A stretch of 64,000 nt of DNA from the NCBI RefSeq assembly GCF_030028105.1, contig NC_092379.1:28885821-28949820 (forward strand), in the 5' to 3' direction. A model generated the notes under the pieces. It was given only the letters and a program-made list of their open reading frames with translations, was not told the origin of the DNA and ran no database searches. This stretch comes from Mobula birostris. Taxonomy: Eukaryota. Below, piece by piece: positions 6,102 to 60,726 of this stretch; the stretch's first letter is position 1, and each line of letters opens with the position of its first letter. The translations under genes and the position numbers were made by a program.

Positions 6102-6115
6102 GCGCCCTCCTGTGA
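6102..6115 (-). promoter_or_regulatory. CTCF-like motif downstream of the V2 RSS
   Basis: TCACAGGAGGGCGC versus consensus CCASYAGRKGGCRC, 24 bp beyond the nonamer. Confidence 0.4.
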
Positions 6116-6139
6116 GACCTTTTTGCATCACACAGAACT

Positions 6140-6178
6140 AGCTTTTGTCCGGACCAGCCGTCTGCATACAACAGTGTG
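6140..6178 (-). other. 23-RSS of V2
   Basis: CACACTG + 23 bp (TTGTATGCAGACGGCTGGTCCGG) + ACAAAAGCT. Confidence 0.92.
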
Positions 6179-6598
6179 GTACTCATTGCACAGAGATACC
6201 TGCCAGAGTCCGACACCAGAGCTTCACGGATGTGCAATTGAGCCGTCTTGCTGACTATCTGCGAACTAGCGGTAAACCGATTAATTCGATTCATTCCTCC
6301 AATGCTAGTTCCCTTCAGCAAATACTTTGGAGGTTCTCCACTACGTTGAATGTACCAAAAGAGATCTGGATCATCGTAAGTGTAATTACAGTTTAGTGTT
6401 ATGTTCTGTCCTTCCTTGGCCATTCGGTCGGGAGGATCCTGCGTCACTGAAGCTTTCCCACTTGCTCCTGCAAAAAGGGACAGAATAGATCAACAACGCC
6501 GGCTTGTATTGAACGCCGGGGTAATTCGCTGGCCACCTTCGCAGACACTCACCAGGCAGCACAGCCAGTGCAATCATTAGTAAACAGAGGGAAACCAT
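6179..6598 (-). CDS. Intact TCR V segment V2 (TRAV/TRDV-like, family A); leader 6553-6598, V exon 6179-6467
   Basis: Spliced product MVSLCLLMIALAVLP/GASGKASVTQDPPDRMAKEGQNITLNCNYTYDDPDLFWYIQRSGEPPKYLLKGTSIGGMNRINRFTASSQIVSKTAQLHIREALVSDSGRYLCAMS; canonical Cys, Trp and YxC; 85-nt GT-AG intron; 23-RSS. Confidence 0.9.
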
Positions 6599-6659
6599 GA
6601 TGTCTAATTTCTGGCTGAATAGAATGGCAGATGCCTTCCAGGACATAATTGTCACTCAA

Positions 6660-6805
6660 CAGATATTGTGGTGTGAGGTCGTTTCAGCGATACCTTTCAC
6701 CGTATGTAAGAGCGAGGGCGTTTTCTTGGTTAAAGGACTGGCTGACACAATAAACCGAGACTTTCTGAGCACCAATCAGAATCTGTTTTTCTCATACGTC
6801 ATTCT
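6660..6805 (-). promoter_or_regulatory. Putative V2 promoter
   Basis: RUNX-type TGTGGT 6667-6672; CCAAT box 6772-6776 (CTGATTGGT in gene sense); CRE half-site TGACG 6797-6801. Confidence 0.5.
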
Positions 6806-6809
6806 GCCT

Positions 6810-6810
6810 G

Positions 6811-6841
<31 letters not shown>

Positions 6842-6842
6842 G
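6810..6842. repeat. (CT)n microsatellite upstream of V2
   Basis: Direct inspection. Confidence 0.95.
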
Positions 6843-8039
6843 TGTGCCCTACTGCCTTTGTTACCCTGTTATCTGCATACCCACAGCATATTCAGAAACT
6901 TATCAAACTGTAATCATACGCAATTAGGCATTTTCCACACGGTCGTTTCTTCAATATCGACAGAATCCTGCTGGAAGTAGTTCATGTATTTATTTGTTTG
7001 TTTAGTTAGTTATTTGGTGATATATCCCACAATAGTCCCTTAGGTCAACATTTTTCAATCTTCAGGCATTGAACTAGTTATTCAATGTCAGCAAGTGTTC
7101 ATCTAGTTTTTGTTTGCTGTTGCGGAGCCAATCTGCCATCCACGCCAATGGACTCCTGAAAGCACACTTTGTGCAGTCAGCAATCTCTTCGTTAAGAAAA
7201 ATACTCACATCTGCATGCCACTTGTAATTATTTCAAATCGCATTAAAATATCGTAATAACGCATTCGCCATTTCCACCCATAGGTCAAAGCGCTGATTGT
7301 CCTCTCTGTCTATGCCTCTGGACATATTATGCACAGTTATTAAGTTACCCCTCATCTTCCTTCTTTACAGAAAGAAAGGGCCTTGTTCGCAGAAACTGAA
7401 ATGACCTGTGGAAGAAACAGGCACTTGCCGATGTGTAACTGAAGTTGAGCATTACGATTCCTCTTCCTTTAATTGTCGATGCCGAGAGCCAGATCTTTCC
7501 CACACGCTTTTGCAGAAGAAGGATAAAATAACTGAACATCAAGTGCTTCCATTGCACCTGCGAGACACCCACTGACTATTTGCGAAAAGATTCGCCAGGC
7601 AGCGTAGACGATATAATCAGTAAGGGTCAAGGACGCACATGGGGTCTGCTCTCACGCACGGTCCTAAGCAGATAACAAGAAGCTGATACCACAGATATGC
7701 GAGAATTATGTCAGATACGCTGCACCCTTCACTTCGTGGAAAACCTCCGTAATTTGCTCTTCTAACTGGGAGTTGAACCTTGGAAGTCAGAGCTGAGATT
7801 ATTTCACCACCGTCGTGAATGGAACTAATACACTCTCTGTTTATTTATCAGTCATTCACTTTCATTCAGGTGCCTTGCCGTTCGGTGTGGGCGATCATGT
7901 GTCTCCATCCATCACAGTCCCTAACCCTCCGAATTATGTTTTTTGCCTGCCCTGTTTCTAACCATGATGTTATTCCATCTATCATTTTCATTCCCTGTCT
8001 CGCTCTGCTTCTTTTTCTTCCAGATTTCCAGTTGTAATT

Positions 8040-8590
8040 AAATGTTCTAATGTCTCTCTTCGGATGAAGTGTCCAAAGAATTTTGATTGCTGTTTTCTGA
8101 TTTTTTAAGTAATGTACGTTTTCTTTTCGTTCTCTGTAGTACTTCTTCGTTGGTTATTCTGTCTGTATATGATATGCATATCATTCTTCTGAGGAACCAC
8201 ATCTCTGCTAAATTGATTCTATTTCCTGTTGCATTCGGGATTGCCCATGACTCACAACCATACACCAAGACAGGAAGAATTTAGCAGCTAAGTGCTCTAG
8301 GGCGGTTGTCAATTGCTTTTTTCTTGTTCGTTAGGATGTTTCTGATTTCTGTAAATGCTGTTCTTGCTATTGCTATTCTTGCTTTTATGTCTGTTTCGCA
8401 TTTGCCATCAGATGTTACCCATGATCGAAGGTACTAGAAGTTGTGAACATGTTTCAGGATTTTATTTCCCAATACGATCCTACAGTTTGGGATATCAGGT
8501 TTATTTGATATTACCATTACTTCGGCTTTCTTTTTGTTTAAGGTTCGTCCAAGTCTTTCGCTGTCTGTGTTGAAAGTAGATCATTCACTC
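8040..8590 (-). mobile_element. RTE-clade LINE fragment (C-terminal RT region)
   Basis: ORF 8047-8268 YGCESWAIPNATGNRINLAEMWFLRRMICISYTDRITNEEVLQR, typical of RTE elements. Confidence 0.75.
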
Positions 8591-9256
8591 TAACTATATT
8601 CTGTTTGTCAATCTCACTTTTCCCTTTTTCGTTCTACTTTAATAAACATTTCATTTCTTGCAACGAATCTCTGTCTTTGTTCCCTTTTTTGTTACTGTCC
8701 CACATTTCCGTTGCTATGTCACTCAATGGCTCCCAGTCTGCCTCTGTATTCCCATTTTACTGAAACCTCAATGTAGCTTTAAATGTGTTATGGGAACGTC
8801 CCTTCATCCAACGCCAGTCCATTCGGTATTAATTTGCAATTCGTAAAATAGACATCAATTTATCTGAACTTTTAGGACGCTCATGTCAATGGACACCACC
8901 TGCAATTTATCTTTAGCCGTAACATTAAGTGTGACAGCATGTCCAATGCTGTCTGGACATATACACCCTCAGTATCTCTAGGTTACACTCATCTTCGCTG
9001 TTAATCCCTCGAGGTAGTGAAAAATGAAGTCTAGCAAAAAAATAACCACAAGATATTCTTAGAGGCAACAGAGCGACATGGACACCACCATATAGTAGAA
9101 ATGCTTCAGAAAGCCGCCATAATATCCCTAGGTAAATCTAAATTCAAGCAGTGTTCCACAAGTTTGGTCACATTTTGTTGCTGAATGCGGCATTTCAAAT
9201 CCACCACGTGGTCTTCAAGCTTTCTGCGTATAGCTGTTCCAGTTCCGCAACAAAAG

Positions 9257-9270
9257 GCGCCCTCTGGTGA
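9257..9270 (-). promoter_or_regulatory. CTCF-like motif downstream of the V3 RSS
   Basis: TCACCAGAGGGCGC, 13/14 match to CCASYAGRKGGCRC, 12 bp beyond the nonamer. Confidence 0.6.
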
Positions 9271-9282
9271 TCACGCAACGCT

Positions 9283-9321
9283 GGACTTTTTACAGACCCG
9301 CTGTTTCCCTACAACACTGAG
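9283..9321 (-). other. Degenerate 23-RSS of V3
   Basis: CTCAGTG + 23 bp + AAAAAGTCC; the essential CAC is mutated. Confidence 0.75.
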
Positions 9322-9950: not shown

Positions 9951-9954
<4 letters not shown>

Positions 9955-12886: not shown

Positions 12887-15522
12887 CAGTGGTCCCCAAA
12901 CACCGGCCGCGGACCGGTACCGGGCCGCAAAGCATGTGCTACCGGGCCAAGGGGAAACGATAAGATTTGGCGATATGAAACCATATGAGTCAGCTGCACC
13001 TTTCTTCATTCCCTGTCACGCCCACTGTTGAACTTGAACTCACGCGAGGTCATTACTCACGCGATGACATCAGTTGGTCAATCACCTGCAAGTACTCAAT
13101 GAGTAAAAGAGCAAACGTCGCTTGAGAGTTTCTTTGAAATAGATGGTCGCAGACATAAAAAAGCCTAACGATGACGGTAACGCAGAGACAGCTGAGGCCG
13201 AGACTGCAAAAGAAAACAGAAAAAGTCGTTCAACAGAAAATGGTGACTCGCACGTTCCAGGCCCCCTTGTGTGTGATTTGTGGCGACAAGCTGTCCAAGG
13301 AGGCAATGAAGCCCTCAAGACTGCTTCGGAACCTTGAGTCCAAGCACCCCGTATTTAAAGACAAAGCCGTTGAGTTGTTTGAGCGGGAGAAACGTGATCA
13401 AGTGGGACAGAAGCAAGGGCTGAGGGCCACCACCTCCACAAATGCTGCTGCTCTGAGAGCGTCGTACTCAGCGGCTAGCCGGATTGCTAAGGCTAAGAAG
13501 CCTTTGACTGTCGGTGAAGAATTGATTCTGCCTGATGCCAAAGACATATGCTGTGAACTGTTGGGAGACCCTGCATCTAGCAAGATGGCACAGATTTCTC
13601 CTTTAGCTACCACAATCTCAAGGAGAATCGATTACATAGGGGAGGACATTGAAGCACAGCTGTTTGAACGACTTAACTAATCTGGTTTCACTACCCGAGT
13701 CAAATAGGTTGCTCCTGAATGACAGTCTACACACGGTGTAACACACAGGGAAATGCTGGCCAGCAGAAAAATGTCACCTGACTTTAAGAGCGTATTGAGT
13801 GACGTTGTTGAAGTTATCAATCACATCAAAGCAAAAGCCCTGACCTCACGTCTGTTTGAGCAGCTTTGCGAGGAAATGGGTACAGAGCACAAACGCCTTC
13901 TCTTACACACTGAAGTCAGTTGGCTATCAAGGGGGAGCGCCCTGGCCAGGGTTTTCGAGAGGGAAGGGCGGCTACAGATATTTCTTTCGAGAAAAAAATC
14001 ACCACTGGCAGCACACTTCAGTGACGAGGAGTGGACAGCAAAACTCGCGTATGTGTGACATCTTCAACCTGCTCAATGAACTCAATTTGTCACTTTAGGG
14101 GAGAATCACAACTGTCTTCAAGCTGGCAGATAAAGTGTCTGCTTTCACAGCTAATCTGGAACTGTGGGGACGGCGAGTGGACGGGCACATATTTGACATG
14201 TTCCCACCATTAGCTGGGAATCTGGGAGAAACTGAGGCTCACAGCTGGTGCAGGAACACCTAACTTCGCTGTCGACAGAATTAGAGTGTTACTTCCCAAC
14301 CGCATCTGACCCAAGACATGCAAAGCAATGGGTCCGTGACCAATTTGTGAATGTCCCTGGGGAATCATCTATGTCAGCGCGAGAAGAAGGTCAACTCATC
14401 GAGCTAGCAAATGACGGTGGGCTGAAAAGTATGTTTGACATAACGTCCCTTCCGGCATTCTGGATCAAAGTCAAGGCTGAAAATACTGAGACAGCCACGA
14501 AAGCACTGAAAACGTTGCTTCCATTTCCAACATCATATCTCTGCGAAGCGGAGTTTTCTGCAATGAATGCATTGAAATCCAAATTGCGGAATAGACGGGA
14601 CATAAGGAACCCCCTTATAATTGACTTATCACTATATTCATGCGAGGAAAATATGCGCTGTGTGTTTAGTATTAAATTCGTTAGGTAAACCCTTTTAGAA
14701 ACGAAATTGAGTGATTAGATTAGATTATTAGATTATGAGGACACGCAGTCCTCTTTTATTGTCATATAGTAATGCGGGCATTAGGAAATGATACAATATT
14801 CCTCCGGTGTGATATCACAAAAACACAGGACAAACCAAGACTGAAAAAAGAACAAATCCACATAATTATAACATATAGTTACAATAGTACAACAATACCA
14901 TAACTTTTTGAAGAACAGTCCATGGCACAGTAAAAAAGGTCGAAGTTTCTCGAAAGTCCCACATCTCATGCAGACGGGAGTAGGAAGAAAACTCTCCCTG
15001 CCATACCCGACTGCACTCCGACTCTGAGTCGCCCGAAAACTTCGAGCTCTGATCAGCCCTCCGACATCGAATACCAAGCACCATCTCTGTCCGGAAGTTC
15101 CGAGCTCAGCCTCGTTCGCCAGCAGCAGGCAAAGCCGGGGATTTTAGGGCCTACCCTTCGGCGATTCTCGATCGCACAGTAACAACAGCAGCGAACCAGA
15201 CATTCCAGAAATTTCTCCAGATGTTCCTCTGCTTCTCACGCCTGTCTTCATCAAATCCGAATTGTCCACGGCTCCTATTTAACAGATACGATATCATTTT
15301 CACCGGAGAGCCGCGCGCGCGTCGCGCTGCCATCTTCTCCTCCCGCCTGAGCGTATTATTCACTGACTGAGAATATTAGATTGAGTCAATAGCCACTCAT
15401 AAGTGACTTAGAGTTGACGTATGACCTATATTCCGGTAGCCACCCCACCCCCCTCGGCCAGTCCGCAAGAATATTGTCAATATTAAACCGTTCCGCAGTG
15501 CAAAAGAGGTTGGGGACCCCTG
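12887..15522 (+). mobile_element. Buster/Charlie-type hAT DNA transposon, internally deleted and decayed
   Basis: TIRs CAGTGGTCCCCAAAC and GGTTGGGGACCCCTG; transposase remnants PLCVICGDKLSKEAMKPSRLLRNLESKHP, LLLHTEVSWLSRG, LLPFPTSYLCEAEFSAM; the catalytic DESTD region is missing. Confidence 0.9.
14713..15350 (-). mobile_element. Non-autonomous retroelement nested in the hAT
   Basis: Starts with a (TAGAT)n tail and TTTATT; interrupts the hAT between the transposase end and the right TIR; truncated homologue at 47.87-48.3 kb. Confidence 0.55.
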
Positions 15523-17180
15523 CTCTAACAAACCCAATGTTTGTGAGAGGCGCCGTATCCTTATGGGTTGAGTTAAGAAACTGCAAGGGTTAAGGAACCC
15601 TGCTGGCAGTTGTATGCAAACCTCCCGACAGTATGTAGAATGTGGAGCACAGATTACAAGAGGAAATGGAAAAGGCGTCTCAAAGGATAATGTTATGATA
15701 GCCATGGGAGATGACAACATGCAGGTAGATTGGCGAAGTCAGGTTTGATATGGATCTCAAGAGAGTGAAACAACATCTTAGAGCCGATTGTCCATCACCC
15801 TGCACGGCGATCAGTTGTACAGGATTGGGTGTTGTGTGATAAACTGGAGATAATTAGTGACCTTAGGATAAAAGAACAATTTCAAGGCAGTGATCCAAAT
15901 ATGACTGAGTTCAACTTGAAATTTGCCAGTGAGAAAGTAAAATCTAACGAAGCAGTATTGCAGCACAGCAAAGGAAATTTCAGTGGCATGTGTGTGGAGC
16001 TGGCCAATGAATTCAGAATGCAGGACTTGAAAGGACAGGCTGCAAGGGTGGACAACAGAGCAGTAAGTGCGTGAATTTCTGGGGAAAATGAGAAAGGAGC
16101 CCGATAGCTGTATCCAAAAAATGAGGATATACGCAGATGGAAAAGCAGTACAACCGTGGCTGACAAGGGGACTCAAAGCTAACGTAAGAGCAAAAGAGCG
16201 GGTATACAACTAAGCAAAAATTAGTAGCAAGACAAAGGATCAGGAAACTTTCAAAACCCGAGAGTAAATCTAAAAGAATCATTAGGAGGAAAAAGATGAT
16301 ATGTGAGCGCACACCAGCAAACAATGTCAAGGTGGATAAAAAAGGTATTTTCAAGAATGTAAAAAAAAAGAATTGAATTGAGAGTGCATATCGAAAGCAA
16401 GAAAATGTAGCCGAAGAAATAATGCTGGGAGACAAGTTGATGGCCGATGAACGATATGAGTATTTCGCATCAGATTTCACAGTGGAAGACCCGAGCAGCG
16501 GGTCAGACGTTGAAGGGTGCAAGGGAAGATATGTGATTGCAATTACAGTTACAAGGGTGAAGGTCCTCAAAACGCTGAAGGACAGAAGAGCATATAAGTC
16601 ATCCGAACAACATGAACTGCACCCTTGCGCCCTGAAAGTGGTAGCCGTAGAGATTGCGGAGGCATTAGGAATGATTTTTCAAAATCATTGTCAATGATAT
16701 AGATGATGGAATATATGGCTGCGTTGCGAAGTTTGTAGATGATACAAAGATTGACGGAAGAATAAGTCGTTCTGAGGAAACATGCAGGCCACAGAAGGAC
16801 AGAAAGATGAGGAGAAAATGTAAGAGAGTGGTCGCGAAGTACAATGCACCAAAACGCATATCATGCATATTGGTATAAGAAATAAATGTGCAGACTATAA
16901 TGTAAAAGTTCAAAAATCTACGATGTAGGGAGACTTGGAGGATCCAAGTGCAGAACACCCTGACAGCTAACTTCCAGGTAGCGTCTGTGGTGAGGAAGGA
17001 AAATACGCTGTTAGCATTCCTTTCAAGATGTCCAGAATACATGGGCAGAGATGTAATGCAGAGGATTTATAAGACACTTGAGTCCACATCTTGAGCATTG
17101 TAAACAGTTTTGGGTTTCTATTGTAACAAAGATATAGTGGCATTGGAAAGGGTTCAGAGGACAGTCACATGTATGACACT
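15523..17180 (+). mobile_element. Decayed CR1 LINE fragments (EN and RT)
   Basis: Remnants such as GSDPNMTEFNLKF, LKVVAVEIAEALGMIFQ and CVAKFVDDTKI; homologous to 48.5-50.2 kb. Confidence 0.7.
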
Positions 17181-17327
17181 GTCAGTCCCGCAAGCAAAGC
17201 AGCTGTCCAACTAACTGTAAAATGTAGTCAGTAATTTCTCCCCTTTCCCCCGGAGTTTCGCCTTCTTAAATCAATCACGTGACAGTAGTAGATATGTGTT
17301 TGCGCTCCGGCTGTCTTTCGGCAAAGG

Positions 17328-17341
17328 GCTCCCTCTAGCGA
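17328..17341 (-). promoter_or_regulatory. CTCF-like motif downstream of the V4 RSS
   Basis: TCGCTAGAGGGAGC, 23 bp beyond the nonamer; identical at 50335-50348. Confidence 0.55.
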
Positions 17342-17364
17342 GCGGCCACTGCATCACGGAGGTC

Positions 17365-17403
17365 GGATTTTGTCTGAAGCCGTCATCGCCTTGCAACACT
17401 GTG
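17365..17403 (-). other. Near-consensus 23-RSS of V4
   Basis: CACAGTG + 23 bp (TTGCAAGGCGATGACGGCTTCAG) + ACAAAATCC. Confidence 0.95.
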
Positions 17404-17836
17404 GGCATCATGGCACAAAGATAAACAGCGGAGTCCGACACAAGAGCACCAGAGATGTTGAAATGGGCTGCCTTGCTGCCACGCTGCCAACCAGCGGTAA
17501 ACCTCGCTGGACATTCTGGATGCCGTTCCATCGTGCCAGTGCTATATACCCTCAGCAAATATCTTGGAGATTCCACGCGATGCTGAACGTACCAAACAAT
17601 AGACTGAGGATTGCCAGTGTAATTACAGTTCAGTGTTACAACTTGTTCTTCCGCAATCGTTAATTCAAGAGGCCATTGCGTCACCGAATCTTTACCATTT
17701 GTTCCTACAATAAAAGGACAGAATGCATGAACAGATCGGGCTTTCTTCGGACAGACTGAACAGATATAGGGCGTTACCGCGGAGACTCACCGGGCAGCAT
17801 AGTCAATATAATCAGCAGATAACACAGAGAATTCAT
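17404..17836 (-). CDS. Intact TCR V segment V4 (TRAV/TRDV-like, family C); leader 17791-17836, V exon 17404-17704
   Basis: MNSLCYLLIILTMLP/GTNGKDSVTQWPLELTIAEEQVVTLNCNYTGNPQSIVWYVQHRVESPRYLLRVYSTGTMERHPECPARFTAGWQRGSKAAHFNISGALVSDSAVYLCAMM; 86-nt GT-AG intron; consensus heptamer. Confidence 0.92.
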
Positions 17837-27940: not shown

Positions 27941-28745
27941 TTCCAAAAGTGTTTCTCTTATACTATCTCGTCACACAGTGCAATGAATCGATCTGTGTGA
28001 TCTGAACAAATTCAACATTTCACAACATGCAATTCTAACTTGGATATTTAAAGATACATTGGAAGGAAGACATTGCCATTGACATGTCTATTCTGGAGAC
28101 ATTAAACAATCTAGTTTTGTCCTATCTTGTCACTCCTATTCCTTCCTCACAGATTGTGAACGCATCTATCACAATGGTACCCGCTATATGTATCATACTA
28201 TAGATCCATAGGTTGTGTAACTTATGTAAATAATCAATAAAATGATAAGTATTTGTCACAACATCCTATCTTTCAGCGGCAAACCATTCGTTATGCATAG
28301 TCAATCCGAGGAACGCCGATTTTCCCCACTCTCTGGTTTTCTTTTTTGAATCAATGTCAATAGTTTCCACATGAGCATTCGCCTTGATCTGTAGCTGTTG
28401 ATGTTGCACCGCATTCAATGTTCTCTATTTCCAAGTTCGACGATAACCTCACTGTTGCTCCCTCAAGGATCCCTAACAACGTTGAATACAGTTGACAATC
28501 GTGATATGGCATCCCAAGCAAAAGAGGGTATTTAGATACTGTAGACATACAAGAAATCCAATGTAATGTTTTCATTTGAATTGAATCCAAGAATAGCACT
28601 CAAGCTTGCCACATTTTGCGACCGAGCGGCGCCCATTTAAGTCGACCACGTAACCTTACTAATGTCTGTGTCCGCTCTTTGCAGTTAAATGGCAAAACAG
28701 GCCCTCCGCTGACATTTATTGCATCATCCAGAATTGGTTTATTTT

Positions 28746-28784: not shown

Positions 28785-29412
28785 GTTTCTCATAACACAC
28801 AGAAACATTGTGCTGTACAACAAACAGCTCCAAGATATTCTTGACGTTAACTCTAACCAGACATTATGGAGGACGCTCGAAATTTTCCTGAAATTATTTT
28901 AGAGATTCCCCGCAATGCTGATTGTACTGAAAGTAGTTACGGCAGCGCTAGTGTTGCGTTCTGTCTTTCTCATACTTTAATTGAAGGGAAAACTACATCA
29001 CTAATAGAATATTGGAAGATACCTGGCTTGCACTAATCTCACTAGAAATCAGTTGGACGCCACTTCACGGCATTCGTAGGCAAAAGGTCAATGCAAACTA
29101 GAAGGAACAAAGGAATGGCGCATGGCGTCAGGCTTCTGACTCTGTCGAATGGCAGTCTAGTTTCCAAGTAGTTACTTTTAATTAGCAGATATTCGCTAGT
29201 ATAAGTAAAATTCAGTGTTATGGCCAGTCCTTCTTCGAGCGTTAATTCAGGAGGGTCCTGTTTCACTAAATCTTCCCTCTCGCTTCTGCAAGAAAGAACA
29301 TGTGCATGAGCATCCCTGGTTTGCAATGAAACCACGGGGCACTGATTGTCCATCACAGAGACTCACCGTACAGAACAGATAATACAATTAGTAAGGAACG
29401 GAGGGGATGCAT
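28785..29412 (-). pseudogene. TCR V pseudogene V5 (divergent family D) with an internal insertion
   Basis: 46-nt leader MHPLRSLLIVLSVLY with GT donor; exon LVKQDPPELTLEEGLAITLNFTY (Cys to Phe, frameshifted); ~240-bp insertion; FR2 remnant QHCGESLK; ends FLCVMR before the RSS. Confidence 0.75.
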
Positions 29413-31438: not shown

Positions 31439-31871
31439 TAGTCATTGCACAAAAGTACATGCTGGAGTCCAAAACATGAGCTTAAACGATCTGCAATTGA
31501 GCTGTCTTGCCGCCTTCCTGCAGACTAGCGGTGAATCTCTCTGGGCAATGTGGACGCCGCTCCATTCTTCCTGTGCTACATACCGTCAGCAAATAATTTG
31601 GAGGTTTTCCACAATGCTGAATCCACACAATGATATCTGCATCATCGTTGGTATAATTACAGTTCAGTGTTATGGTCTGTCCTTTTTCAGCCGTTACGTC
31701 GGGAGGATCCTGCGTCACTGAGTCATTGAACTACTCGTTCCTGCAATAAAGGGCAGAATACATCAACATCGCCGGCTTGTATTGAACGTCGGAGAAATTC
31801 GCTGGCCACCTTCGCAGAGACTCACCAGGCAGCACAGCCAACGCAAGCACTAATGAACAGACGGAAATCAT
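31439..31871 (-). pseudogene. TCR V pseudogene V6 (family A position), RSS absent
   Basis: Leader MISVCSLVLALAVLP intact; early frameshift giving TGA; TAA after QIV; ends TAC TTT TGT GCA ATG ACT with no heptamer. Confidence 0.85.
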
Positions 31872-33789
31872 GCTGTCTAATTTCTTGCTCGATCGAGCGG
31901 CAGACTCCTTCTAGGTCGTAAATATCACTTAGCAGTTACTGTTGTGTGAGATCGTTGAAGCGGTACCGTTTACTATAGTTAACACCGCGGACGTTTCCCT
32001 GGTTAAAGAATTCGCTAAAACTAAGAACCGAGCCTTTCTGAGCGCCATTCAGAATCCGCTTTGTTTCCATTCGTCATTCTCAGATTTTCTCCGCTCATTC
32101 AAGATCCCGCGTCCACGCCCCGCCCTATCCGTCTCTCTGCCTCACACTCTCTCTTTCTCAGTGTGCCCAACTGCCTCTGCCCTCTGTTCTCTTTATATTC
32201 ACAGCATATTCATATACTTATCGATGTGTAATCCAAATCAATTATCAATGTTCACGTGGTCACTTCGTCATCTTCGTCAATATTACGCTGTAAGTAGTTG
32301 TTTATACATTTGTTTATATAGTCAGTTATTTGGAGATATATCCCACAATTGTCCCTCAGATCAACATTTATCAGTCTTCCGGCATTGAACTAGTTATTCA
32401 GTGTCAGCAAGTGTTCATCTGGTTGTTCCCTAATCTTGGTTGGCTGTTAGGGAGCCAATCTCCTATCCACGCCAATAGACTCCTCACATCACCCTTTATG
32501 CAGCCACCACTCCTTTCGTTAAAAAAAACAACTCACATCTGGCAGTCCCCCTGTAATTTCTTTTCATCGCCTTAAAATATCGTCCTCTCGCATGACCCAT
32601 TTCCTCCCTTAGGTTGTCCATCTTTCTTGCCTTTTGTCATATTATACATAGCTATTAACTAACCCCTCATCTTTCGTCTTTCCAAAAAAAAAAGGTACTT
32701 GTTCGCAGAAACTGAAATGTCCCGGGAAATATACATGCACTTGCGGATGTGCAACTGAACTTCAGCATTTCGATTCGTCCTCCTTTAATCGTCAATGCAG
32801 AGAGTTTAATCCTTCCCAAACGATTCTACAAAAGAAGGACAAAATGACTGAACATCTATTGCTCCTGCTGCACCTGCAAGACACCCACTGTATATTTGCG
32901 CAAAGATTCACGGCAACATAGCCCATAGACTCAGTAACAATCAAGGAAGCACATGGTGTCTGCTTTCAAGCGCGAACTAAATCCAGATTACATACAAGAA
33001 GCTAATACCACAGGTTTGAAAGAATGTTATCAGATACGATGTACCCTTCATTTCGTGTAAAACCTGCGAATATTGTTCTGCTAAGTGAGAATTGAACCAG
33101 GGAAGGCACAGCTGAGCCTGTTTAGCCACCGATCTGACTGGAACTACTACATTCTGTTTAGTTCTATATTTCTGTTCTACTTGTCGATCTCAACCCTCAT
33201 CTCTTCGTTCCTTCTTTCTCCTATGTTTCCGTCCCTGTGTCACTCGATCGCCCTCTTTCTGCCTGTATATTCCAATCTCCATTTTTTCTAAATCACCAAT
33301 GCAGATTTCAACTAGTTGTGGGAACATCGTTTAATCCAATTCCAGTCCACTAGGGATTCATTTTCAATCCGAAACATAAACATCCATTTATCTACACTTT
33401 GAGAAAGCTAATGTTAATAGACGCCATCTGAAATTTATCTTCATCTAAGCATTTAGTGTTACAGCTAATAGGATGCTGTCTGGTTATATACACCGTCGGA
33501 ATCTCCAGGTTGCGCTCATCTTCACTGCTATTCCCTCATGGGGATGGAAAATGATGTCCAGCTGAAAAGAAAATAGTCACAAGATATTGTTATAGGCAAG
33601 AAAGAGAGACATGGTCACCGAGATGTAGTGGAAATGTACCGGAAAACTGCCACGATATCCCGAAGTAAAGGTAAATTTAAGTAGTGTTCCACAAAGGTGG
33701 GAACATTTTGTTGCTGAATGCCGCGTTTTACGTTGACCACGTTATCCTCATGCTCTGTGCGTGCAGCTGTTCCAGTTTCCCAACGAATG

Positions 33790-33803
33790 TCGCCCTCTAG
33801 TGA
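33790..33803 (-). promoter_or_regulatory. CTCF-like motif downstream of the V7 RSS
   Basis: TCACTAGAGGGCGA, 12 bp beyond the nonamer. Confidence 0.55.
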
Positions 33804-33815
33804 TCACACAGGGCT

Positions 33816-36651: not shown

Positions 36652-38591
36652 AGGTTACCGCCGATTCCCAGTTGGAGATATCGGTACGAAAAGAATACTT
36701 AATACCGACTGTAACGTCGAAATAGTGACTGCTGATTCCACTCTCGCTTTTGAACGAGCCATATCAGTCTGTCATTTATTAGGGGGAGAGAGAGAGAGAG
36801 AGAATGCCTGTGAAACGATGAAATGTTGCAGTAAACAGCTAGCTTTCGTTTTACTGTAGACCGTGTCCCTCTTTGTGTTTGTGGTTGTTTCGATGGTGAT
36901 TGGTGGTGGAAATGCTGATACTATATGCTAGAATAAGTGAGAGATGCAGAAGCTCGTCAGGTTAATGCTGCTTGCCGCTGATTGTGCGAGGGATGTGGCA
37001 GGGGAATTTTAGGTTCTTATCTTTTTTCATGATATTGATGCTTTGTGTTTTTATGCTGTTTTAAGGATGTCTGTGAAGACAGTAAATTTCAGGCTGTGTA
37101 TTTTGTACCTCTCTGATTTTAAGCGGAACCATTGAAACAAGCTGGGCATTCGTTTCGCTGTACCCTGGTACAAATGACGACAACAAATATATAATAAATA
37201 TAAGCCAGTTTGATGTAACTGTGATCGTCTGCAAAGTGAAAGAATATATCAGGCTGTCCTTCATTAGTTCATAGAACATGGGTTGAGCCGGAAAGTGTCG
37301 GTGGTGGTGGACTGCAGAGTGCCTATCATGACATCCTGGCGATATCTCGTTTCATGTCCCAGGGATTCGGTTCGATTCCGGCCTTCCGATGCTGTCAGTG
37401 GATCCTTACGTGCTCAGTTTCCACAATTCCCGAGTTGCTATGTTTTCCACTGCCCGAAAAAGTCGTTTTGGGTAGCACGTGCTCGTGATCGGAGGATCAC
37501 TGAATGTACATGTGAAGAGGAATTTGCGAAATTGGACAGATAAATCAGTCGACAATAAGACCATAAGATACTGGACCGAAGTAGGCCATTTGGCTTGTCG
37601 AGTCAGCTCCGCGATTTCAGAAGAGAAGGTTTCGTGATGGAATTATTCGATACACTAAACATATAATTAAAATGAGATTTCAAAAAGTCGAAATATACCT
37701 TTGGAAACAGATGCTATCAGTTTGTGCTCCTTCGACTGTAACGGAACGTTTTCACTGTTTGTCTCTCTCATTGGTGTGAAAACACAAACTTCTCAAAGCG
37801 AGTTCTCAAGAAACAACAATAGACTATTCCCACTTGCAAGAGTATTAAACTGCAGGATGAAATTGAATATTAATCTTGGTATGACCTATCTCTTTATTTC
37901 CTGCCTGCGCTGCATTTTTATACACCTGTACAGTTTATTTTTGTATCTTGAAAATGTTTTACTTTGTACCATCTCGATAAGCTGTGTAGTGAATGCTACA
38001 CGTGGTGATAACATCAGATCCGTTAAATCTGATTGGGAAACCAGATTATACAAGCAATCACTCTGTTGTGATTCCATTCTCTCTCTCTTTTCCTTCGCTT
38101 GCTTTTATACTGAAAATACCTTCAAAGATATGAATCTCGGGGTAGTGTGCGGTCACGTATATGTCCTTTAATCATGAGAATGTAACGACCAAAATAGTAT
38201 CTGCATTCTCCGACACGCTGAGCATCCGCAGGTTCTGCCGAATTATCTAAATACTCAGTATAAATCATAAGTAACTCCTGCAACATCCAAACTTTCAGTA
38301 GCATGCCACTTGCAATTATTTGTCAATTCGAAAACGACCAATTTTCACACCCTCAGTTTCCTTTAGTCCGCCATTGTGCCATTTAAATATATCCCGGTTT
38401 CACTCCGTCCTCATTATTTCACACTGCAGATACTTGAACACAGTGGCCAAAGACGATGTCAAACAAGGCTGTCAATCGTGATATGTCGTTGCAGCAAAAG
38501 ATGGTGGGTGATTGCACATTGCGGTATCCCAGAAAGTTATGAAGCTCAGTTTCTTTCCGCGTTGTAATCAGGAACTGCTCCTTTAGCTTCG

Positions 38592-38697
38592 GCGCCTTCT
38601 GCTGCTGAATGCAGCGGTCTGAAGTAGGGCACGTGACTGTGACTGATTTCTGGGTGCGCCCTCTGCAGATTCCTCGGTAAAAGGCACCCTCCACTGA
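38592..38697 (-). promoter_or_regulatory. Cluster of three same-orientation CTCF-like motifs plus an E-box downstream of V9
   Basis: TCAGTGGAGGGTGC (38684-97), TCTGCAGAGGGCGC (38656-69), GCAGCAGAAGGCGC (38592-605); CACGTG at 38630-35. Confidence 0.45.
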
Positions 38698-38721
38698 GAG
38701 CTTTTTGCAATATACAGAACC

Positions 38722-38760
38722 AGTTTTTGCACGGACTCGCCGTCCCCATATAACAGTGTG
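38722..38760 (-). other. 23-RSS of V9
   Basis: CACACTG + 23 bp (TTATATGGGGACGGCGAGTCCGT) + GCAAAAACT. Confidence 0.9.
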
Positions 38761-39183
38761 GTACTCATTGCACAGAGATACATGGCAGAGTCCGACACAA
38801 GAACTTCACGGATATTCAATTGAGACGACTTGCTGCCTTTCTGTGAAGTAGCGGTAATCCTCTCTGAATACCGCTGCGTTCCTCCTGTGCTATATAACTT
38901 CAACAAATAGTTTGGAGCTCCTCCACTATGTTGAATGTACCAAAACATATCTGTATTAGGGTAGGTGTAACTACAGTTCATTGTTATGCTCTGTCCTTCC
39001 TCAGTCGTTACATCGGGAGGATCCTGCGTCACTGAATATTGCCCACTCGTTCCTGCAAGAAAGAACAGAATATATCAACAACACTGGCTTGTATAGAATG
39101 CCGGGCAAACTCGCTAGCCAGCTTCGCTGAGACTCACCAGGCAGCACAGCCAATGCAATCAGCAATGAACAGAGAGAAATCAT
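38761..39183 (-). CDS. Intact TCR V segment V9 (TRAV/TRDV-like, family A); leader 39138-39183, V exon 38761-39052
   Basis: MISLCSLLIALAVLP/GTSGQYSVTQDPPDVTTEEGQSITMNCSYTYPNTDMFWYIQHSGGAPNYLLKLYSTGGTQRYSERITATSQKGSKSSQLNIREVLVSDSAMYLCAMS; 85-nt GT-AG intron; 23-RSS. Confidence 0.92.
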
Positions 39184-41847: not shown

Positions 41848-42379
41848 ACGCTCCCTAGCTCTGCGGGTACACCCGTTTACAAACTGCCAGTTCACTCGGT
41901 ATTCAGGTATTCATTGTCAATCTGAAAAACAGCCAATTGTTCTCCACTTTTAAGACTCGAATGTTAATAGAGTCCACCTGAAATTTATCTTCATCAGAAG
42001 GATTTACATGATAACTTATCCGATGCTGTCTAGACACATGCACCCTCAGTATCTCCAGGTTGCAACTTCTCTTCACTGTAAATCGCGCAAGCTCGTCAAA
42101 AATTATGTCCAGCCTAATGTTAACCACACAATAATGTTATAGGCAACAGACACACAATATTGTTATAGATACTGAGATATAGTGAAAAATGTTTCGGAAA
42201 GATGCCACGGTAATCCGAGGTAGAGCTGAATTCAAGAAGTTTTCCTCAATGTTTGGCGCATTTCGCTGCTGAATGCAGCATTTTAAGTCGAACACATGAT
42301 CCTTATTCTTTGTGCGTGCGGCTGTCCAGTCTCCCAGCTAAGCCGTTCTCTACTGATCCTGAGTCCCTGCAATTCTGTA

Positions 42380-46062: not shown

Positions 46063-48494
46063 CAGTGGTCTTCAACTACCGGCGGCGGACCGGTACCAGG
46101 CCACAAAGCATGTGCAACCGGGCCGCGGGGAAACTATACGATTTGGCTCTAGGAAACGATATGAGCTCGCTGCAACTTACTTCATTCCCCGTCACGCCCA
46201 CTATTGAACTTGAACGCACGCGAGGTCTTTATCCACGCGAGGACATCAGTTTGTCATTAACCTGCAACTACTCAATGAGTAAAAAACAAAACGTCGCTTG
46301 AGAGATTCTTTGAAAGAGATGGTAGGTGACATAAAAGGCCTAACGATGGTGATAACGCAGAGACAGCTGAGGCCGAGACGGCAAAAAAAAACGGAAAGCT
46401 TCCTTCAACAGAAAATGCGACGAGTCGTACATAAAATATGGCTTATTACGACCGGTGACTCGCACGCTCCAAGCCCCCTGTGTGTGATTTGTGGAGACAA
46501 GCTGTCTAATGAGGCATTGGAGCCCTCAAAACTGCTTCGGAACCTTGAGTCCAAGCACCCCGCATTTAAAGACAAAGCCGTTGAGTTTCTTTGAGCGGAA
46601 TAAACGTGATCAAGCGGAACAGAGGCAAGTGCTGAGAGCCACCACCTCCACAAATGCTGCTGCTCTGAGAGCGTCGTACTTAGTAGCTAGCCGTATTGCT
46701 AAGGCTAAGAAGCCTTTCCACTGTTGGTGAAAAATTGATTCTGCCTGCTGTCAAAGACATGTGCCGTGAACAGTTGGGAGAAACGGCAGCTAACATGATA
46801 GCACAGGTTTCTCTTTCAGCTACCACAAATTCAAGGAGAATCGATGACATAGCGGAGGACATCGAAGCACAGCTGTTGGAACGGTTTAACGAGTCTGGTT
46901 TCACCACCCGAGTCAAAGAGGTTGCTCCTGAAAGACACTCCATACTGTGTCGCACATAGGGAAATGCTGGCTAGCTGAAAAATGTCACCTGACCTTAACA
47001 GCGTATTGAGTGACGTTGTTGAAGTTATCAATCACATCAAAGCAAAAGTCCTGACATCACATCTGTTTGAGCAGCTTTACGAGGAAATGGATACAGAGCA
47101 CAAACGCCTTCTCTACACAATGAAGTCAGGTAGCTATCAAGGGGACCAGGGTTTTCGAGATAAGAGGCCAGCTACAGAGATTTCTTTCGAGAAAAAAGTC
47201 ACCACTGGCAGCACACTTCAGTGACGAGAAGTGGACAGCAAAACTCGTTTATCTGTGTGACATCTTCAACCTGCTCAATGAACTCAATTTGTCACTTCAG
47301 GGAGGATGACAACTGTCTTCAAGTTGTCAGATGAAGTATCTGCTTTCACAGCCAAACTGGAACTGTGGAGCCGGCGAGTGGACAGGGGCATATTTGACAT
47401 GTTCCCAACATTAGCTGGGAATTTGGGAGAAACTGGGTCTCGCAGCTGGTGCGTGAACACCTATCTTCGCTGTCGACGTATTTCGAGCGTTACTTCCCAA
47501 CAGCAAATGACGTAAAACGTGTGAAGGAATGGGTCTATGACCCATTTGTGAATATCCCCGGTGAACCATCTATGTCAGCGCGAGAAGAAGATCAACTCAT
47601 CGAGCTTGCAAATGACAGTGGGCTAAAAAGTATGTTTGACATAACATCTGTTCCGGCATTCTGGATCAAAGTCAAGGCTGAATATATTGAGATAGTCTTG
47701 AAAGCACTGAAAGGGTTGTTTCCATTTCCAACATCATATCTCTTCGAAGCGGAGTTTTCTGCAAAGAATGCAATGGAAACTAAATTTCAGAATAGACTGG
47801 ACATAAGGAACCCTCTTATAATTGATTTATCACTATATTCATGCGAGAAAAATATGCGCTATGTGTTTAATATGGCACAGTAAAAAGAAAAGTTCAAAGT
47901 TTCTCGGAAGTCCCCCATCTCACGCAGATGGGAGAAGGCGGAAAACTCTCCCTGCCATACACGACCATACTCCGACTCTGCGTCGTCCGAAAACTTCGAA
48001 CTCTGATCAGCCCTCCGACACCTAGTACAGAGCACCATCTCTGCCCGAACATTTCGACCTCAGCCTCGGTCGCAAGCAGCAGGCAAAGCCGGGAATTTTG
48101 GGGCCTAACCTTCGGAGATTCTCGATCGCACAGGAACAACAGCAGCGAACCAGGCATTCCAGAAATGTTTCCAGATGTTCCTCTGTTTCTCACGCCTGTC
48201 CTCCTCAAATCAGTATTGTCCACGGCCCCTACTTAACAGATACAATATCATTTTCACCGGAGATCTGCACGCGCGTCGCGCTGCCATCTTCTCCTCGCCT
48301 GGGCGTATCAGCCACTGACTGAGCGTATTGGATTGAGTGCATTAGCCACTGATAAGTGACTTAGAGTTGACTTATCACCTATATTCCGGTCGTTATTGAC
48401 GACACCGCGCCCCCCCCCACCCCCCACGGCCAGTCCGCAAGAATATTGTCAATATTAGACCGGTCCGCGGTGCAATAAAGGTTGGGGATTCCTG
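46063..48494 (+). mobile_element. Second Buster/Charlie hAT remnant, paralogous to 12887-15522
   Basis: TIRs CAGTGGTCTTCAAC and GGTTGGGGATTCCTG; same transposase remnants, same internal deletion and same nested element. Confidence 0.88.
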
Positions 48495-50180: not shown

Positions 50181-50371
50181 TGACACAGTCAGTCCCGCAA
50201 GCAAAGCAGCTGTCCAACTAACTGAAAAATGTAGTCAGTAATTTCTCCCCTTTCCCCTGGAGTTCCGCCTTCTTAAGTCACTCACGTGACAGTGGTGGAT
50301 AAGTGTTTGCGCTCCGGCTGTTTTCCGGCAAAGGGCTCCCTCTAGCGAGCGCTCACTGCATCACGGAGGTC

Positions 50372-56420: not shown

Positions 56421-56581
56421 GTTACCCTCTCTTTCAAAATGGGCAGGTTTTAGCAGACTTTCAATTTTTTGCTCTCGACCCTTGTCGCGTGTCTTCCTCT
56501 TGCTGTATCCTTACCAGGAGATGTCTCATTTCCTTCTTTGTCTCCCTTAATCACTCTTAACACCTCTTTCTTCTCCTTTCT

Positions 56582-56758
56582 NNNNNNNNNNNNNNNNNNN
56601 NNNNNNNNNNNNNNNNNNNNNNNNNNNNNNNNNNNNNNNNNNNNNNNNNNNNNNNNNNNNNNNNNNNNNNNNNNNNNNNNNNNNNNNNNNNNNNNNNNNN
56701 NNNNNNNNNNNNNNNNNNNNNNNNNNNNNNNNNNNNNNNNNNNNNNNNNNNNNNNNNN
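56582..56758. other. N run
   Basis: 177 N at the position paralogous to 20086-20240. Confidence 0.95.
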
Positions 56759-57870
56759 GGATTCCCTGTGGGTGCTCCTAATTGGCAAACATTTATCCAC
56801 GCATCAGTATATTCCTCCTTGAACGAAACTGCTACTAGGGGTTCTGGGTGTATTGTAGTTCTTGTCGCCCTGCCCCTTCACCCTCTTGTAGCCTCTGAGC
56901 AGGGAGGTTGTGTTGTCTCATGGCTCCTGAGGACGGGAAGTTCTTCGATGTTGTGCAGGATGCGGTGGGCCGCGGGTGCTCTTCATTCCAGCCGTCCATT
57001 GTACGGACGATCTGTTCTTTCGAGATCGGTAATCGCACTGCATTAGGGAGAGCTGATCATGCAAATATACATAGCGGAAACAGGCACAAAACCACTGAAG
57101 CTATTTGAATCTAAGCAGTGGCCATTTCATGTTAAACAACCTGAAATCTTCACCGATGTAGTTTGCTACTGAGTTTCACTCTCATAAGTCAACCACGTGA
57201 TTCCCGCAAATACTTGGGTACGCCACTTCGACTTTTCTAGCACGACCCGCTCTCTAGCGACGGTTTACTACATCACACCTCACACATACAGTATGTACTT
57301 TAAACATAAATTCACTTTGATCAATGAACATTTCTCACAGCCCGGTAATACAACGGCCAAAATACTATAAGCATTCTCTATCATGCTAAACATCTGCAGG
57401 ATCTGTCGCATTATCTAAATACTCAGTATAAATCATAAGTAGCCACTGCAACATCCTTAATTTCAGCAGCATGTCACCTGCTGTTCTTTGTCTAACTAAA
57501 AACAACGATTTGCCCATACTCTGTTTTCCCTTAGTGTACACTGTCCTACTTAACTATATTGCAGTTCCACTCCACTCCAACCTCGAACAATGTGGCCGAA
57601 GACGACGTCATTCTAGGTTGCCAATCGCGATCTGCAGTTGCAGCAAAGAGGGTGGGTGAATGCACATTGCCGTATCCCGGAAATACATTATAAAGATCCA
57701 GTTTGGGTTTGCATTGTAGTCATGAACTGTTCCAATACCTTCGGCGCCTTGTGTTGGTGATTGCAGCGCTCTTAAGTAGTGCGCGTGACTATGACTATTT
57801 TCAGTATGCGCACTCCCAATTTACCGGCAAAAGACGCCCTCCAGTGAGATCTTTTGCTTTATACAGAACC

Positions 57871-57909
57871 AATTATTGTTCGAGACCCGCCTTCTTCATG
57901 CAACAGGTG
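57871..57909 (-). other. Degenerate 23-RSS of the A-type half of V12
   Basis: CACCTGT + 23 bp + ACAATAATT. Confidence 0.6.
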
Positions 57910-58382
57910 GCACTGATTGTACAGGGATAGATGCCAGAGTCCGACACAAGAGCTTTAACGATATTCAATTGAGCGGTCTTGCTGTCTTTGTACAGGGGTA
58001 TACTCCAGAGTCCGGGACAAGAATTCTACAGATACTGAAATGAGCTGACTCTGTGTTTGTGCATAACAGCTGTAAACCTCGCCCGACATTCTGAATCCAC
58101 GCCAGTTTTCCTCATCATATATAATCAGCAGTTTTTAGGAGATACTCCGCGATGTTTGTCTTAGTTCGTGTGTTACTGCATTTCAGTGCTATCATCTGAC
58201 CTTCGTCAGCCGATAATTCAGGAGCACCCTGATCACAGAATTGTACTTTCTTGTTCCTGCAATGAAGGATAGATTGCAGTGACTTCCCTGACTTGCACCG
58301 AACTGCGCTCTCGCTGGTCATGTGTGCAGCGTCTTAGCTGTCAGGATGGCGAATAAAACCTATAAGAAACTGAAGGACACAT
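57910..58382 (-). pseudogene. Chimeric TCR V pseudogene V12: a family B V fused at its coding end to FR3 of a family A V
   Basis: B part ends GTC CCG GAC TCT GGA GTA TAC CCC TGT ACA AAG AC, then A-type AGC AAG ACC GCT CAA TTG AAT ATC...TCG GAC TCT GGC ATC TAT CCC TGT ACA ATC AGT GC plus RSS. Confidence 0.85.
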
Positions 58383-58590
58383 GCTCCCTCGCTTCAGCCA
58401 CGCTGGGATCACGAATCACTTACAACAATTTATCAATATGACAGATAACGGAGAGTAAAACGTATCGGAAGTAGACTGAATGGTGTAGTGCTCGACGATT
58501 GCAAGGTAAAACCAGAACAAAGGCTATATGAGAACTAGTCAGAACCCAGTTAAGTTGAAATCCCCTTTTTGTCTTTTCCCACACTATAAA

Positions 58591-58621
<31 letters not shown>

Positions 58622-59713
58622 GTCTCTCTGTCTCTCTTTCCCTTTCTCTGTTTCTTTGACTCCCGCCCCCCACTCTACCTGTCTCCATCTATCTATTTAT
58701 CAATCTTTCTCTCTATATCGCATTCTCTCTTTCCCACTCTTTTGCTCTATCCCTACCGACTTCTCTCTCTCATTCTCACTCCGGACATTGATTTCTAATT
58801 TTCTATTTATCTACTCAGTCTCGCTTTCTTTGGCATTCTGCCCGTGCTCTATCCTTTTTCACACTATGTCACTCTATGCCAACCAGCATATCAGTGACAA
58901 TTCCAACGAGTCATCTGCAAAGTTAGGACTTCTCGCTGTTATCTAACTTATGATTAGCCTTTTAATTTATTGACGGAATACCTTTCAATCTTCCAGGACC
59001 CCGTTGGATATTTCTTGTCAATAGCACATTAAATATTTTTTCCCATAGACGAAATGGGATTAAATGTTTAGCGGACATGGAAGGCACCGGTTAGACCAGA
59101 CACACATTGCAAGCACTGAGGTGTCCAGATCCTGTATCGCTGTGGAACGTTGAGTGTTGAACTGCGCAAAGCTATTCAGTGGAGTCCGGCACGATGCCCC
59201 CGAACTTATTTGAGCGAAACATCTTTCCCTAGAGACTTGAAATATTACTGGACTTGTCTTCGCGTAGAACAATACAGTGACACGGTCTGCTCTTCCACGG
59301 TCATTAAATCTCTCCTTTTTCAGTTCACAAAATCTGCAAACTCGTCCCTTAAACAGGTCCTGACTGTAGAGGAGCGACAGAACGCACTGACCCTGCAGGA
59401 CGCGCTCCGACTGATTAGACGGATTCACCAAGCAGAGTAGTCGATACAAAGACCATCCAGGGGTGGTTGTAGCGGGAACATCGGACGTTGAATAAAGTAA
59501 ACAGAGAATGAAATGAAGATGTTTCTCCGATAAAAGAGAAGTTATTCAAGTAAGGAGAAGCAGAGACTTTCCGGGCAACTCGACGCTTTCATTTCAAAGT
59601 ATATGCGGATTTTATTTCTAAATACAGGATTGATATCAACCACAGGACGGTGTGGCGTTAATTGACTCACCTCTCCCCCCACCATCCCCCACCCCCCGTC
59701 TCCGTCACTGTCT

Positions 59714-59768
<55 letters not shown>

Positions 59769-60726
59769 TTTTTTCTCAGTCCATCACTTCTGACTCCGCA
59801 TCTCCGATTATCCTCCGAATCGTCTCCGTCCGTATCTCTCTCACTCACTCTCACTTTCAAGTGGATATGAAGGAGTTTATTTTTGCATTCTTTTAGTGTT
59901 TCACTTTCTACTACTCGATAAGCTGTTTAATTAATGCATCTGTTAAATCCCAGTCAATGCAATCATCCGACAAGAATGAAAAAGCATATTCAGCAAAATG
60001 CCCCACGTGGTGATAACATCAGATCTGTTAAATCTGTTTGGGAAACCAGATGATACAAGCTATCACTCTGTTGTGCTCCCATTGCCTCTCTCCCTCTCTC
60101 GCTCTCTTTTCTACTGAAAGTGGCTTCAGAATATAAGTATATGGGTAGTATGCGGTCAAGTATATGTACTTCAATTATAAAGTTATTTTGAACATTGTAC
60201 CTCTTACGCTATCACGCTAAACATTGGCAGGTTCTGTAGCATTATCTAAATACTCAGTATAAATCAATGTCGTTTTTGCAACATCCTTAATACAGGCAGC
60301 ATGCCACTTGCAAATCGTTGTCAATCCGAAGACCACCATTTTCCCACCTGTGTTTTCCTTTTGTCAGCAACTGTCCTATTTAAATATATCCCGCTTCCAT
60401 TCTCATTATTTCTCGCTGCAGACAGTGGAACAAAGTGTCCATAGACAAGGTCACGCAGAGTTGTCAATCGTGGTATGCAATTGCAGCAAAAGAGGTTGAG
60501 TGAAAGAACATTGCAGTACCCCGGAAAAGCATTTTAAAGTTCCAGTTTAGTTGCGTATTGCAATCAGGATCTGCTCTTTTAGATTCGGCGCCTTCCGCTG
60601 CTGATTTCACCGCTCTTAAGTAGGGCACGTGACCATGGCCGATTTCTATGTGCGCCCCTTCCAATTTCCCGGAAAAAGGCGCCCTCCATTGCGAACCTTT
60701 TTTGCATTATACAAAACCAGTTTTAT

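Follow-up and report, generated by a model that had tools for sequence, protein, structure and literature searches.

Do the V segments of a ray T cell receptor (TCR) locus carry sites for CTCF directly beside their recombination signal sequences (RSSs)? To our knowledge, RSS-adjacent CTCF elements have so far been a feature of proximal VH segments in mouse and human Igh, a setting in which V choice is coupled to loop extrusion through them. The question is raised by a stretch of 64,000 nucleotides from Mobula birostris (NCBI RefSeq assembly GCF_030028105.1, contig NC_092379.1, positions 28,885,821 to 28,949,820 of the forward strand), hereafter the window, whose coordinates count from its first letter. 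A first-pass annotation of this sequence had noted a CTCF-like 14-mer just past the RSS nonamer, always in V sense, and had proposed an architecture of RSS-linked CTCF-binding elements (CBEs), ancient or convergent, across the whole V array. The original observation is real but overstated. The reading that we favour, and hold with evenly divided confidence, is that of a CTCF element, RSS-adjacent as in mouse proximal VH and lineage-restricted, which may stem from an ancestral ray/skate V cassette and would now be decaying here. The copies are homologous, share position and orientation, match the CTCF matrix and have strong versions beside intact V genes elsewhere.

The window holds V exons of TCR alpha/delta type on the minus strand, with coding ends that read YLCAM. 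A tblastn search with the three open V exons as queries finds about 13 V units. An open exon with both cysteines, a canonical CAC heptamer and a 23-bp spacer is present only at V2, V4 and V9:

6181-6447, minus strand: V2 open exon; RSS 6140-6178, CACACTG/23/ACAAAAGCT
17406-17684, minus strand: V4 open exon; RSS 17365-17403, CACAGTG/23/ACAAAATCC
38763-39032, minus strand: V9 open exon; RSS 38722-38760

The remaining units are damaged by stops, frameshifts, long interspersed element (LINE) insertions or truncations. V3 and V7 are pseudogenes with the heptamer CTCAGTG, and V3 also carries stops; since RAG cleavage needs the CAC triplet of the heptamer, both are dead for recombination. V10 is a pseudogene split by a LINE, with its RSS region partly deleted, and V12 is a V-V fusion with a degenerate heptamer. 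The window is a pseudogene-rich, transposon-riddled part of the array.

Are the RSS-adjacent motifs independent of one another? All nine 14-mers quoted in the annotation are found at their places, as reverse complements on the plus strand, since the V genes are encoded on the minus one. Alignment of the V flanks, conversion to a hidden Markov model (HMM) and a scan of the window reveal a module of 110-180 bp in 12 copies, all on the minus strand and following V units, including one at the V5 fragment and an orphan (57161-57260); the scan finds no copy on the plus strand or elsewhere in the 64 kb. The ten copies used to build the model return nhmmer E-values of 1e-34 to 1e-53, and two further copies return 4.5e-11 and 8.5e-8. 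The module begins 12-24 bp past the RSS nonamer with the CTCF-like core as its first block, whose family consensus, read in V sense, is TCACTAGAGGGCGCC. The gap between nonamer and core is 12 bp at V3 and V7, 23 bp at V4, V11 and V12, and 24 bp at V2 and V9, which agrees with the distances first given for V3/V7, V4/V11 and V2. The single orientation likewise stands, with 12 of 12 copies in V sense. The quoted 14-mers are paralogous copies of one V-cassette element, not independent motifs. That is to say, the uniform orientation arose because V cassettes were duplicated and does not represent 13 independent events.

Scores in the following list are bits against the JASPAR CTCF matrix MA0139.1, entered by hand with column sums and consensus as expected, for which 7.8, 12.8 and 16.8 bits correspond to p = 1e-4, 1e-5 and 1e-6, respectively. 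This matrix, at a cut-off of 8, also served in the skate genome paper (PMC10115646). Site 1 is the core of a module, and sites 2 and 3 are additional matches within it.

2474..2656, minus strand: V1 module (pseudogene); core 2640-2653 GCAATGGAGAGCGC, -2.1 bits; site 3 at 2547-2565, 5.5 bits; E-box CACGTG 2587-2592
5938..6118, minus strand: V2 module (open exon); core 6102-6115 TCACAGGAGGGCGC, 5.3 bits; E-box 6048-6053
9100..9270, minus strand: V3 module (pseudogene); core 9257-9270 TCACCAGAGGGCGC; 19-mer 9255-9273, 18.0 bits, the top score in the window; E-box 9205-9210
17179..17343, minus strand: V4 module (open exon); core 17328-17341 TCGCTAGAGGGAGC, 10.3 bits; E-box 17276-17281
28552..28712, minus strand: diverged module at the V5 fragment (29198-29266); core 28699-28712 TCAGCGGAGGGCCT, -1.3 bits; E-box decayed to TACGTG, 28647-28652
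33633..33803, minus strand: V7 module (pseudogene); core 33790-33803 TCACTAGAGGGCGA; 19-mer 33788-33806, 17.2 bits; E-box decayed to AACGTG, 33738-33743
38521..38701, minus strand: V9 module (open exon); site 1 at 38684-38697, 4.5 bits; further V-sense sites 2 (38654-38672, 10.6 bits) and 3 (38590-38608, 14.3 bits); E-box 38630-38635
42188..42356, minus strand: V10 module; core 42343-42356 TCAGTAGAGAACGG, 3.1 bits; E-box decayed to CATGTG
50186..50351, minus strand: V11 module (frameshifted V4 duplicate); core 50335-50348 TCGCTAGAGGGAGC, 10.3 bits; E-box 50283-50288
57161..57260, minus strand: orphan truncated module (V12x); core 57247-57260 TCGCTAGAGAGCGG, 3.9 bits; E-box 57194-57199
57669..57850, minus strand: V12 module; core 57834-57847 TCACTGGAGGGCGT, 2.8 bits; E-box decayed to CACGCG
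60513..60695, minus strand: V13 module (pseudogene, V1 duplicate); core 60679-60692 GCAATGGAGGGCGC, 4.7 bits; site 3 at 60586-60604, 9.9 bits, V sense; E-box 60626-60631

The weaker copies reported at V1, V5 and V13 and the two extra motifs at V9 (10.6 and 14.3 bits) are all present, and two more can be added, at V10 (42343-42356) and in the orphan (57247-57260). No V or RSS lies upstream of the orphan, which is separated by ~400 bp from the V12 module above it and by 403 bp from an assembly gap below it. The module is unlikely to be a coding exon or a structured RNA, as its copies differ by 1-bp indels and the window holds no Rfam match.

How closely do these cores resemble a CTCF site? Inspection of the scores reveals a graded series. 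A level of p < 1e-5 is reached by V3 (18.0 bits), V7 (17.2 bits) and V9 site 3 (14.3 bits), with p between 5e-7 and 4e-6. Sites at V4, V11, V9 site 2 and V13 site 3 are moderate (9.9-10.6 bits), and site 1 scores no more than 5.3 bits at V1, V2, V5, V9, V10, V12, V12x and V13. In family A (V1, V2, V9, V12, V13), G replaces the near-invariant A of the core AG. A CTCF match at genome-scan stringency holds for a subset of sites and not array-wide, and the motif can no longer be said to mark the whole V array: three of the 12 copies are strong, the best ones adjoin dead V genes, and constraint among the window copies is weak (P = 0.06 in the mutant-tolerance simulation given below). Motif strength does not track V intactness here: the strongest motifs belong to V3 and V7, both dead, and the weakest to the intact V2.

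At the level of the family the resemblance is sharper. When 15 copies are weighted and combined into a profile, its mean column r with the CTCF matrix is 0.595, compared with 0.06 +/- 0.13 for permuted matrices, none of which reaches the observed value in 5000 trials, and the information profiles of flank copies and matrix correlate at r = 0.65. Little or no variation occurs at core positions C5, G10, G12, G14 and G16, and at the variable positions 7 and 8 the bases are among those that CTCF allows. At family level, conserved and degenerate positions across the copies follow the CTCF matrix specifically. The claim that the motif exceeds background holds for this profile and fails for counts across the window, which are at chance. 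The CTCF-like signal lies in position alone: the locus-specific pattern occurs 8 times where 0.78 are expected, each time past a V RSS, and the matches of at least 8 bits outside the modules divide into 5 on the plus and 5 on the minus strand, such that the orientation bias arises from the modules alone. An antisense match of 12.4 bits (57897-57915, plus strand) overlies the degenerate heptamer and coding end of V12, at chance level for the window.

Strong versions of the element are found beside related V genes. An exhaustive phmmer search with the V9 exon recovered L001, a scaffold of assembly GCA_028641065.1, which is probably that of the little skate, and L002, a 952-bp contig from run SRR17051963. 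In L001 all three intact V genes are followed, 23-28 bp after the nonamer, by V-sense motifs (17.3, 16.6 and 17.3 bits), with matches to the module HMM there as well. L002 holds an intact V that is ~40-47% identical to the window V exons, followed 23 bp past its nonamer by the motif TCAGCAGATGGCGC (18.1 bits), which is changed only where CTCF tolerates change, and then by a second site of 14.4 bits. Motifs of 16.6-18.1 bits are thus kept at the same offset behind intact V genes, three in L001 and one in L002, and their departures from the consensus lie where CTCF tolerates change. To gauge tolerance, the CTCF scores of the copies were compared with those of random mutants bearing an equal number of changes. 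The copies retain more of the score than the mutants, with P = 0.003 for all copies together and P = 0.001 for L001 and L002, values that are approximate because the reference is the consensus of the same sequences.

A block with the sequence TGCAGT before the core was considered as the canonical upstream motif of CTCF. This upstream (U) motif is missing from many genuine CBEs. Its canonical form, TGCAGTNCC, lies 8 bp before the core, a spacing taken from published CTCF-binding-site sequences (bioRxiv 10.1101/2023.12.05.569896). TGCAGT in V4, V11 and L001b sits 6 bp before the core start, not 11, and being 5 bp too close it is not the canonical upstream motif.

How far does the layout extend beyond rays and skates? 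No RSS-adjacent motif is found at any of 12 V genes in L003, where the V array covers 118 kb of a 330-Mb chromosome, in a short elasmobranch-like contig (L006) or at the single RSS-bearing V scored in bamboo shark (L007), whose second V has no RSS by the criteria used. Among bony fishes, the motif is RSS-adjacent at one of 14 V in Danionella (L008), at one of 4 V in paddlefish (L009, at 47 bp) and at none of 8 V in gar (L010). As far as these small samples go, the RSS-adjacent layout in this V family appears confined to the ray/skate lineage. The ancient origin offered in the annotation is not borne out, as the placement is absent or sporadic in the sampled bamboo shark, L003, Danionella, gar and paddlefish arrays; a lineage-restricted or convergent origin seems to fit better. 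Gar (L010 positions 1753, 7543, 15307 and 20701) and paddlefish (L009 positions 21334 and 22796) do hold strong CTCF motifs of 15-20 bits in their TCR alpha-type arrays, mostly in V sense; these stand in the DNA that separates the V segments, at distances from the RSS that range from hundreds of bp to ~1 kb.

Is the core kept because it is used, or is it simply carried along? It may be a passive relic, in which the module and its CTCF-like start were carried by cassette duplication as a drifting ancestral site with no present function here. We consider this unlikely, though the state of the window lends it weight. V1/V13 and V4/V11 are recent segmental duplicates, the former at 1.7-5.7 kb versus 59.7-64.0 kb (identity 89-94%) and the latter at 13.2-19.3 kb versus 46.4-54.9 kb (identity ~87%). 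Within families, identity is even across the unit and the motif is not favoured; most copies are degraded, the best stand beside dead V genes, and the tolerance simulation returns its P of 0.06 for the window copies alone. A different pattern is seen across families. Identity there is 52-69% over the ~100 bp after the RSS, compared with 60-74% for the V exon, and falls past ~150 bp to an unalignable 35-50%. Agreement among three families is 0.64 for the 14-bp core, close to the 0.67 of both the RSS heptamer and the V coding end, whereas other parts of the module range from 0.33 to 0.55 and DNA past the module falls to 0.14. A drifting relic would also have to account for L001 and L002, which retain strong motifs through CTCF-compatible changes despite V exons only 40-55% identical to those of the window, and for the CpG content, whose observed/expected ratio is 0.94 over the initial 115 bp of the module (GC 53%) versus 0.65 just beyond it (GC 41%) and 0.68 in the whole window. 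The statement that the motif is conserved above its flank accordingly survives across families (0.64 versus 0.14) and fails within family A (68% versus ~76%). The related remark that other flanking DNA barely aligns between families applies only past ~150 bp, the first 110-180 bp being homologous across families with an E-box kept as well as the core.

Contigs from related organisms add little to this comparison. The V3 flank at 88% likeness in four such organisms has 61 variable places over 501 bp, 40 of which are listed, and 9251-9282 contains none of those 40; this lack of listed change over the 18-bit V3 motif is a low-power test and is suggestive only, hinting at constraint. The V9 unit is covered by hundreds of related-organism contigs at 80% likeness because the V family is large and paralogous, and this paralogy largely defeats orthologue footprinting with relatives' contigs.

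The E-box raises the question of whether CTCF is the main reader of the module. CACGTG, usually within TCACGTG, is exact in 8 of the 12 copies, its distance from the start of the core being fixed at 58-62 bp, and with 2 bp on either side it has the highest three-family agreement in the flank (0.70). The module may be a composite regulatory element, read mainly by USF/TFE/MYC-type factors at the E-box together with further blocks. Germline or antisense transcription, for example, might open the RSS, and the module could serve such transcription as barrier, promoter or enhancer; the core would then be one part of it or be bound by another zinc-finger protein. We judge this improbable. In its favour, the GC and CpG content of the module exceeds that of its surroundings, contig depth in two related organisms is greater at 38570-38643, which spans the E-box and site 3, than at site 1, and the family A copies with G at the near-invariant A still keep GGAGGGCGCC. 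The homologous flanks of L001 and L002, by contrast, do not contain the E-box, leaving the CTCF core alone to persist, and which core positions are conserved and which degenerate is a pattern specific to CTCF. The chicken beta-globin HS4 insulator core likewise has a CTCF-type site (CTCF footprint II) and a USF-type E-box (USF footprint IV) within ~60-100 bp of one another. The likeness is only a lead; the L001 and L002 copies have no E-box.

Transposition offers another route by which one motif could come to lie at many V units. Mouse B2 short interspersed elements (SINEs) carry CTCF motifs, and the module could be a fragment of a SINE-like repeat of this kind. Retroposons are known to spread CTCF sites (PMC5504073), and the hundreds of contigs on the V9 unit would suit a repeat. 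This depth spans the V exon as well, however, and so reflects the size of the V family; the copies in the 64 kb keep the V RSS offset and V sense, with none on the plus strand or away from a V, and the window lacks any Rfam match. We regard a transposon-borne origin as very improbable.

If the element is, as we favour, an RSS-adjacent CTCF site, how would it act? Binding of CTCF, stalling of cohesin and an effect on recombination are inferred by analogy with mouse D-proximal VH segments. CTCF bound at the core would turn its N-terminus to the J/C side and would stall cohesin as it reels the V array past the RAG-loaded recombination centre. Stalled cohesin would prolong the dwell of the adjacent 23-RSS at that centre, such that the V in question would be used more. 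In the window the element is in decay, the copies that are neither strong nor moderate having lost key positions, mostly A to G in the core AG. In mouse proximal VH, CBEs directly beside RSSs promote V use (bioRxiv 10.1101/2020.01.01.891473). CTCF specificity is conserved from lamprey to human (PMC5504073), and the boundaries of topologically associating domains in skate bear oriented CTCF motifs (PMC10115646).

The nearest parallel to the layout is that of the D-proximal VH CBEs of mouse Igh (e.g. VH81X-CBE), where a CTCF core lies directly downstream of the V 23-RSS, within tens of bp, in V sense toward D/J/C, and is repeated at many V units of the array. The ray locus differs in being a TCR alpha/delta-type V array, in that all copies go back to a single cassette module, which includes a CACGTG E-box as well, and in that the first core C is T and most window copies are weak or dead. 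Mouse VH CBEs have been shown by mutation to promote V use, whereas the ray elements are known here from sequence. Co-oriented CBEs also occur between V segments or near V promoters in mouse distal VH, Tcra and Tcrb and in gar (L010). These share with the ray array a single orientation through the V segments, which implies organisation by loop extrusion, but they lie hundreds of bp to kb from the RSS, in contrast to the fixed 12-24 bp from the nonamer seen here. Full-text literature searches gave no description of an RSS-adjacent CTCF layout in a cartilaginous-fish TCR V array.

Several points weigh against the favoured reading. Every CTCF score comes from a copy of MA0139.1 entered by hand. 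Only 3 of 12 copies reach p < 1e-5, and only 7 of 12 modules contain anything above 7.8 bits. The two best motifs, at V3 and V7, adjoin V genes with stops and a dead CTC heptamer, and the intact V2 has no site above 5.3 bits. The first C of the core is T in every copy, a base present in 4% of JASPAR sites, and this is the sole systematic departure from the matrix. Matches of at least 10 bits number 9 in the window versus 6.0 +/- 2.3 expected, and, when up to 2 mismatches are allowed, the IUPAC consensus is matched 7 times versus 4.4 +/- 2.1. In family A the motif is no better kept than neutral flank (68% between V2 and V9 versus ~76% overall), and the tolerance simulation for window copies alone (P = 0.06) takes as its 'ancestor' the consensus of the same sequences. 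The J/C end, and hence any convergence of CBEs, lies beyond the 64-kb window. The RSS-CBE architecture proposed in the annotation is thereby retained in part: a CTCF-type core stands behind the RSS in V sense at family level, and in the window it is uneven and decaying.

A broader proposal is that rays and skates evolved, independently of mammals, a module with a CTCF site ~24 bp behind every TCR alpha/delta V RSS and a USF-type E-box 60 bp further on. This is possible, if on the doubtful side. Were it true, large V arrays would have arrived repeatedly at stalling of loop extrusion at the RSS as a means of V choice, and the birth and decay of such a module could be traced along one array. More generally, an RSS-adjacent layout in cartilaginous fish would represent a very old or repeatedly invented link of cohesin stalling with RAG targeting, and the window offers a natural series of strong, weak and dead sites (e.g. 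TAG versus TGG cores). It also supplies its own cautions, in that the module is inherited from a single source, is decaying here and is accompanied by a second conserved block, the E-box.

The structure of the array itself presents further features. The two ends of the window are alike (V1 cassette at 1715-5749, V13 cassette at 59754-63994), which points to a recent large duplication with a period of ~58 kb that probably extends past the window. Two copies of a set of transposase-like open reading frames (13171-14688 and 46298-47883) lie within the duplicated V4 and V11 cassettes; a cassette of ~6 kb or more was duplicated with the transposase-like element already inside. V6 (31440-31718) is a nearly open V exon with one stop, behind which neither an RSS nor a post-RSS module is found; the DNA past its FCAMT end is unlike other V flanks and shows no J-like FGXG motif. 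None of the four runs of N in the window touches a V-RSS-module unit, the closest approaches being at the V8 exon, 237 bp from 36513, and at the orphan module, 403 bp from 56758, and continuity across these runs bears only on the number and spacing of V units. All four runs are flanked by CT-rich low-complexity DNA.

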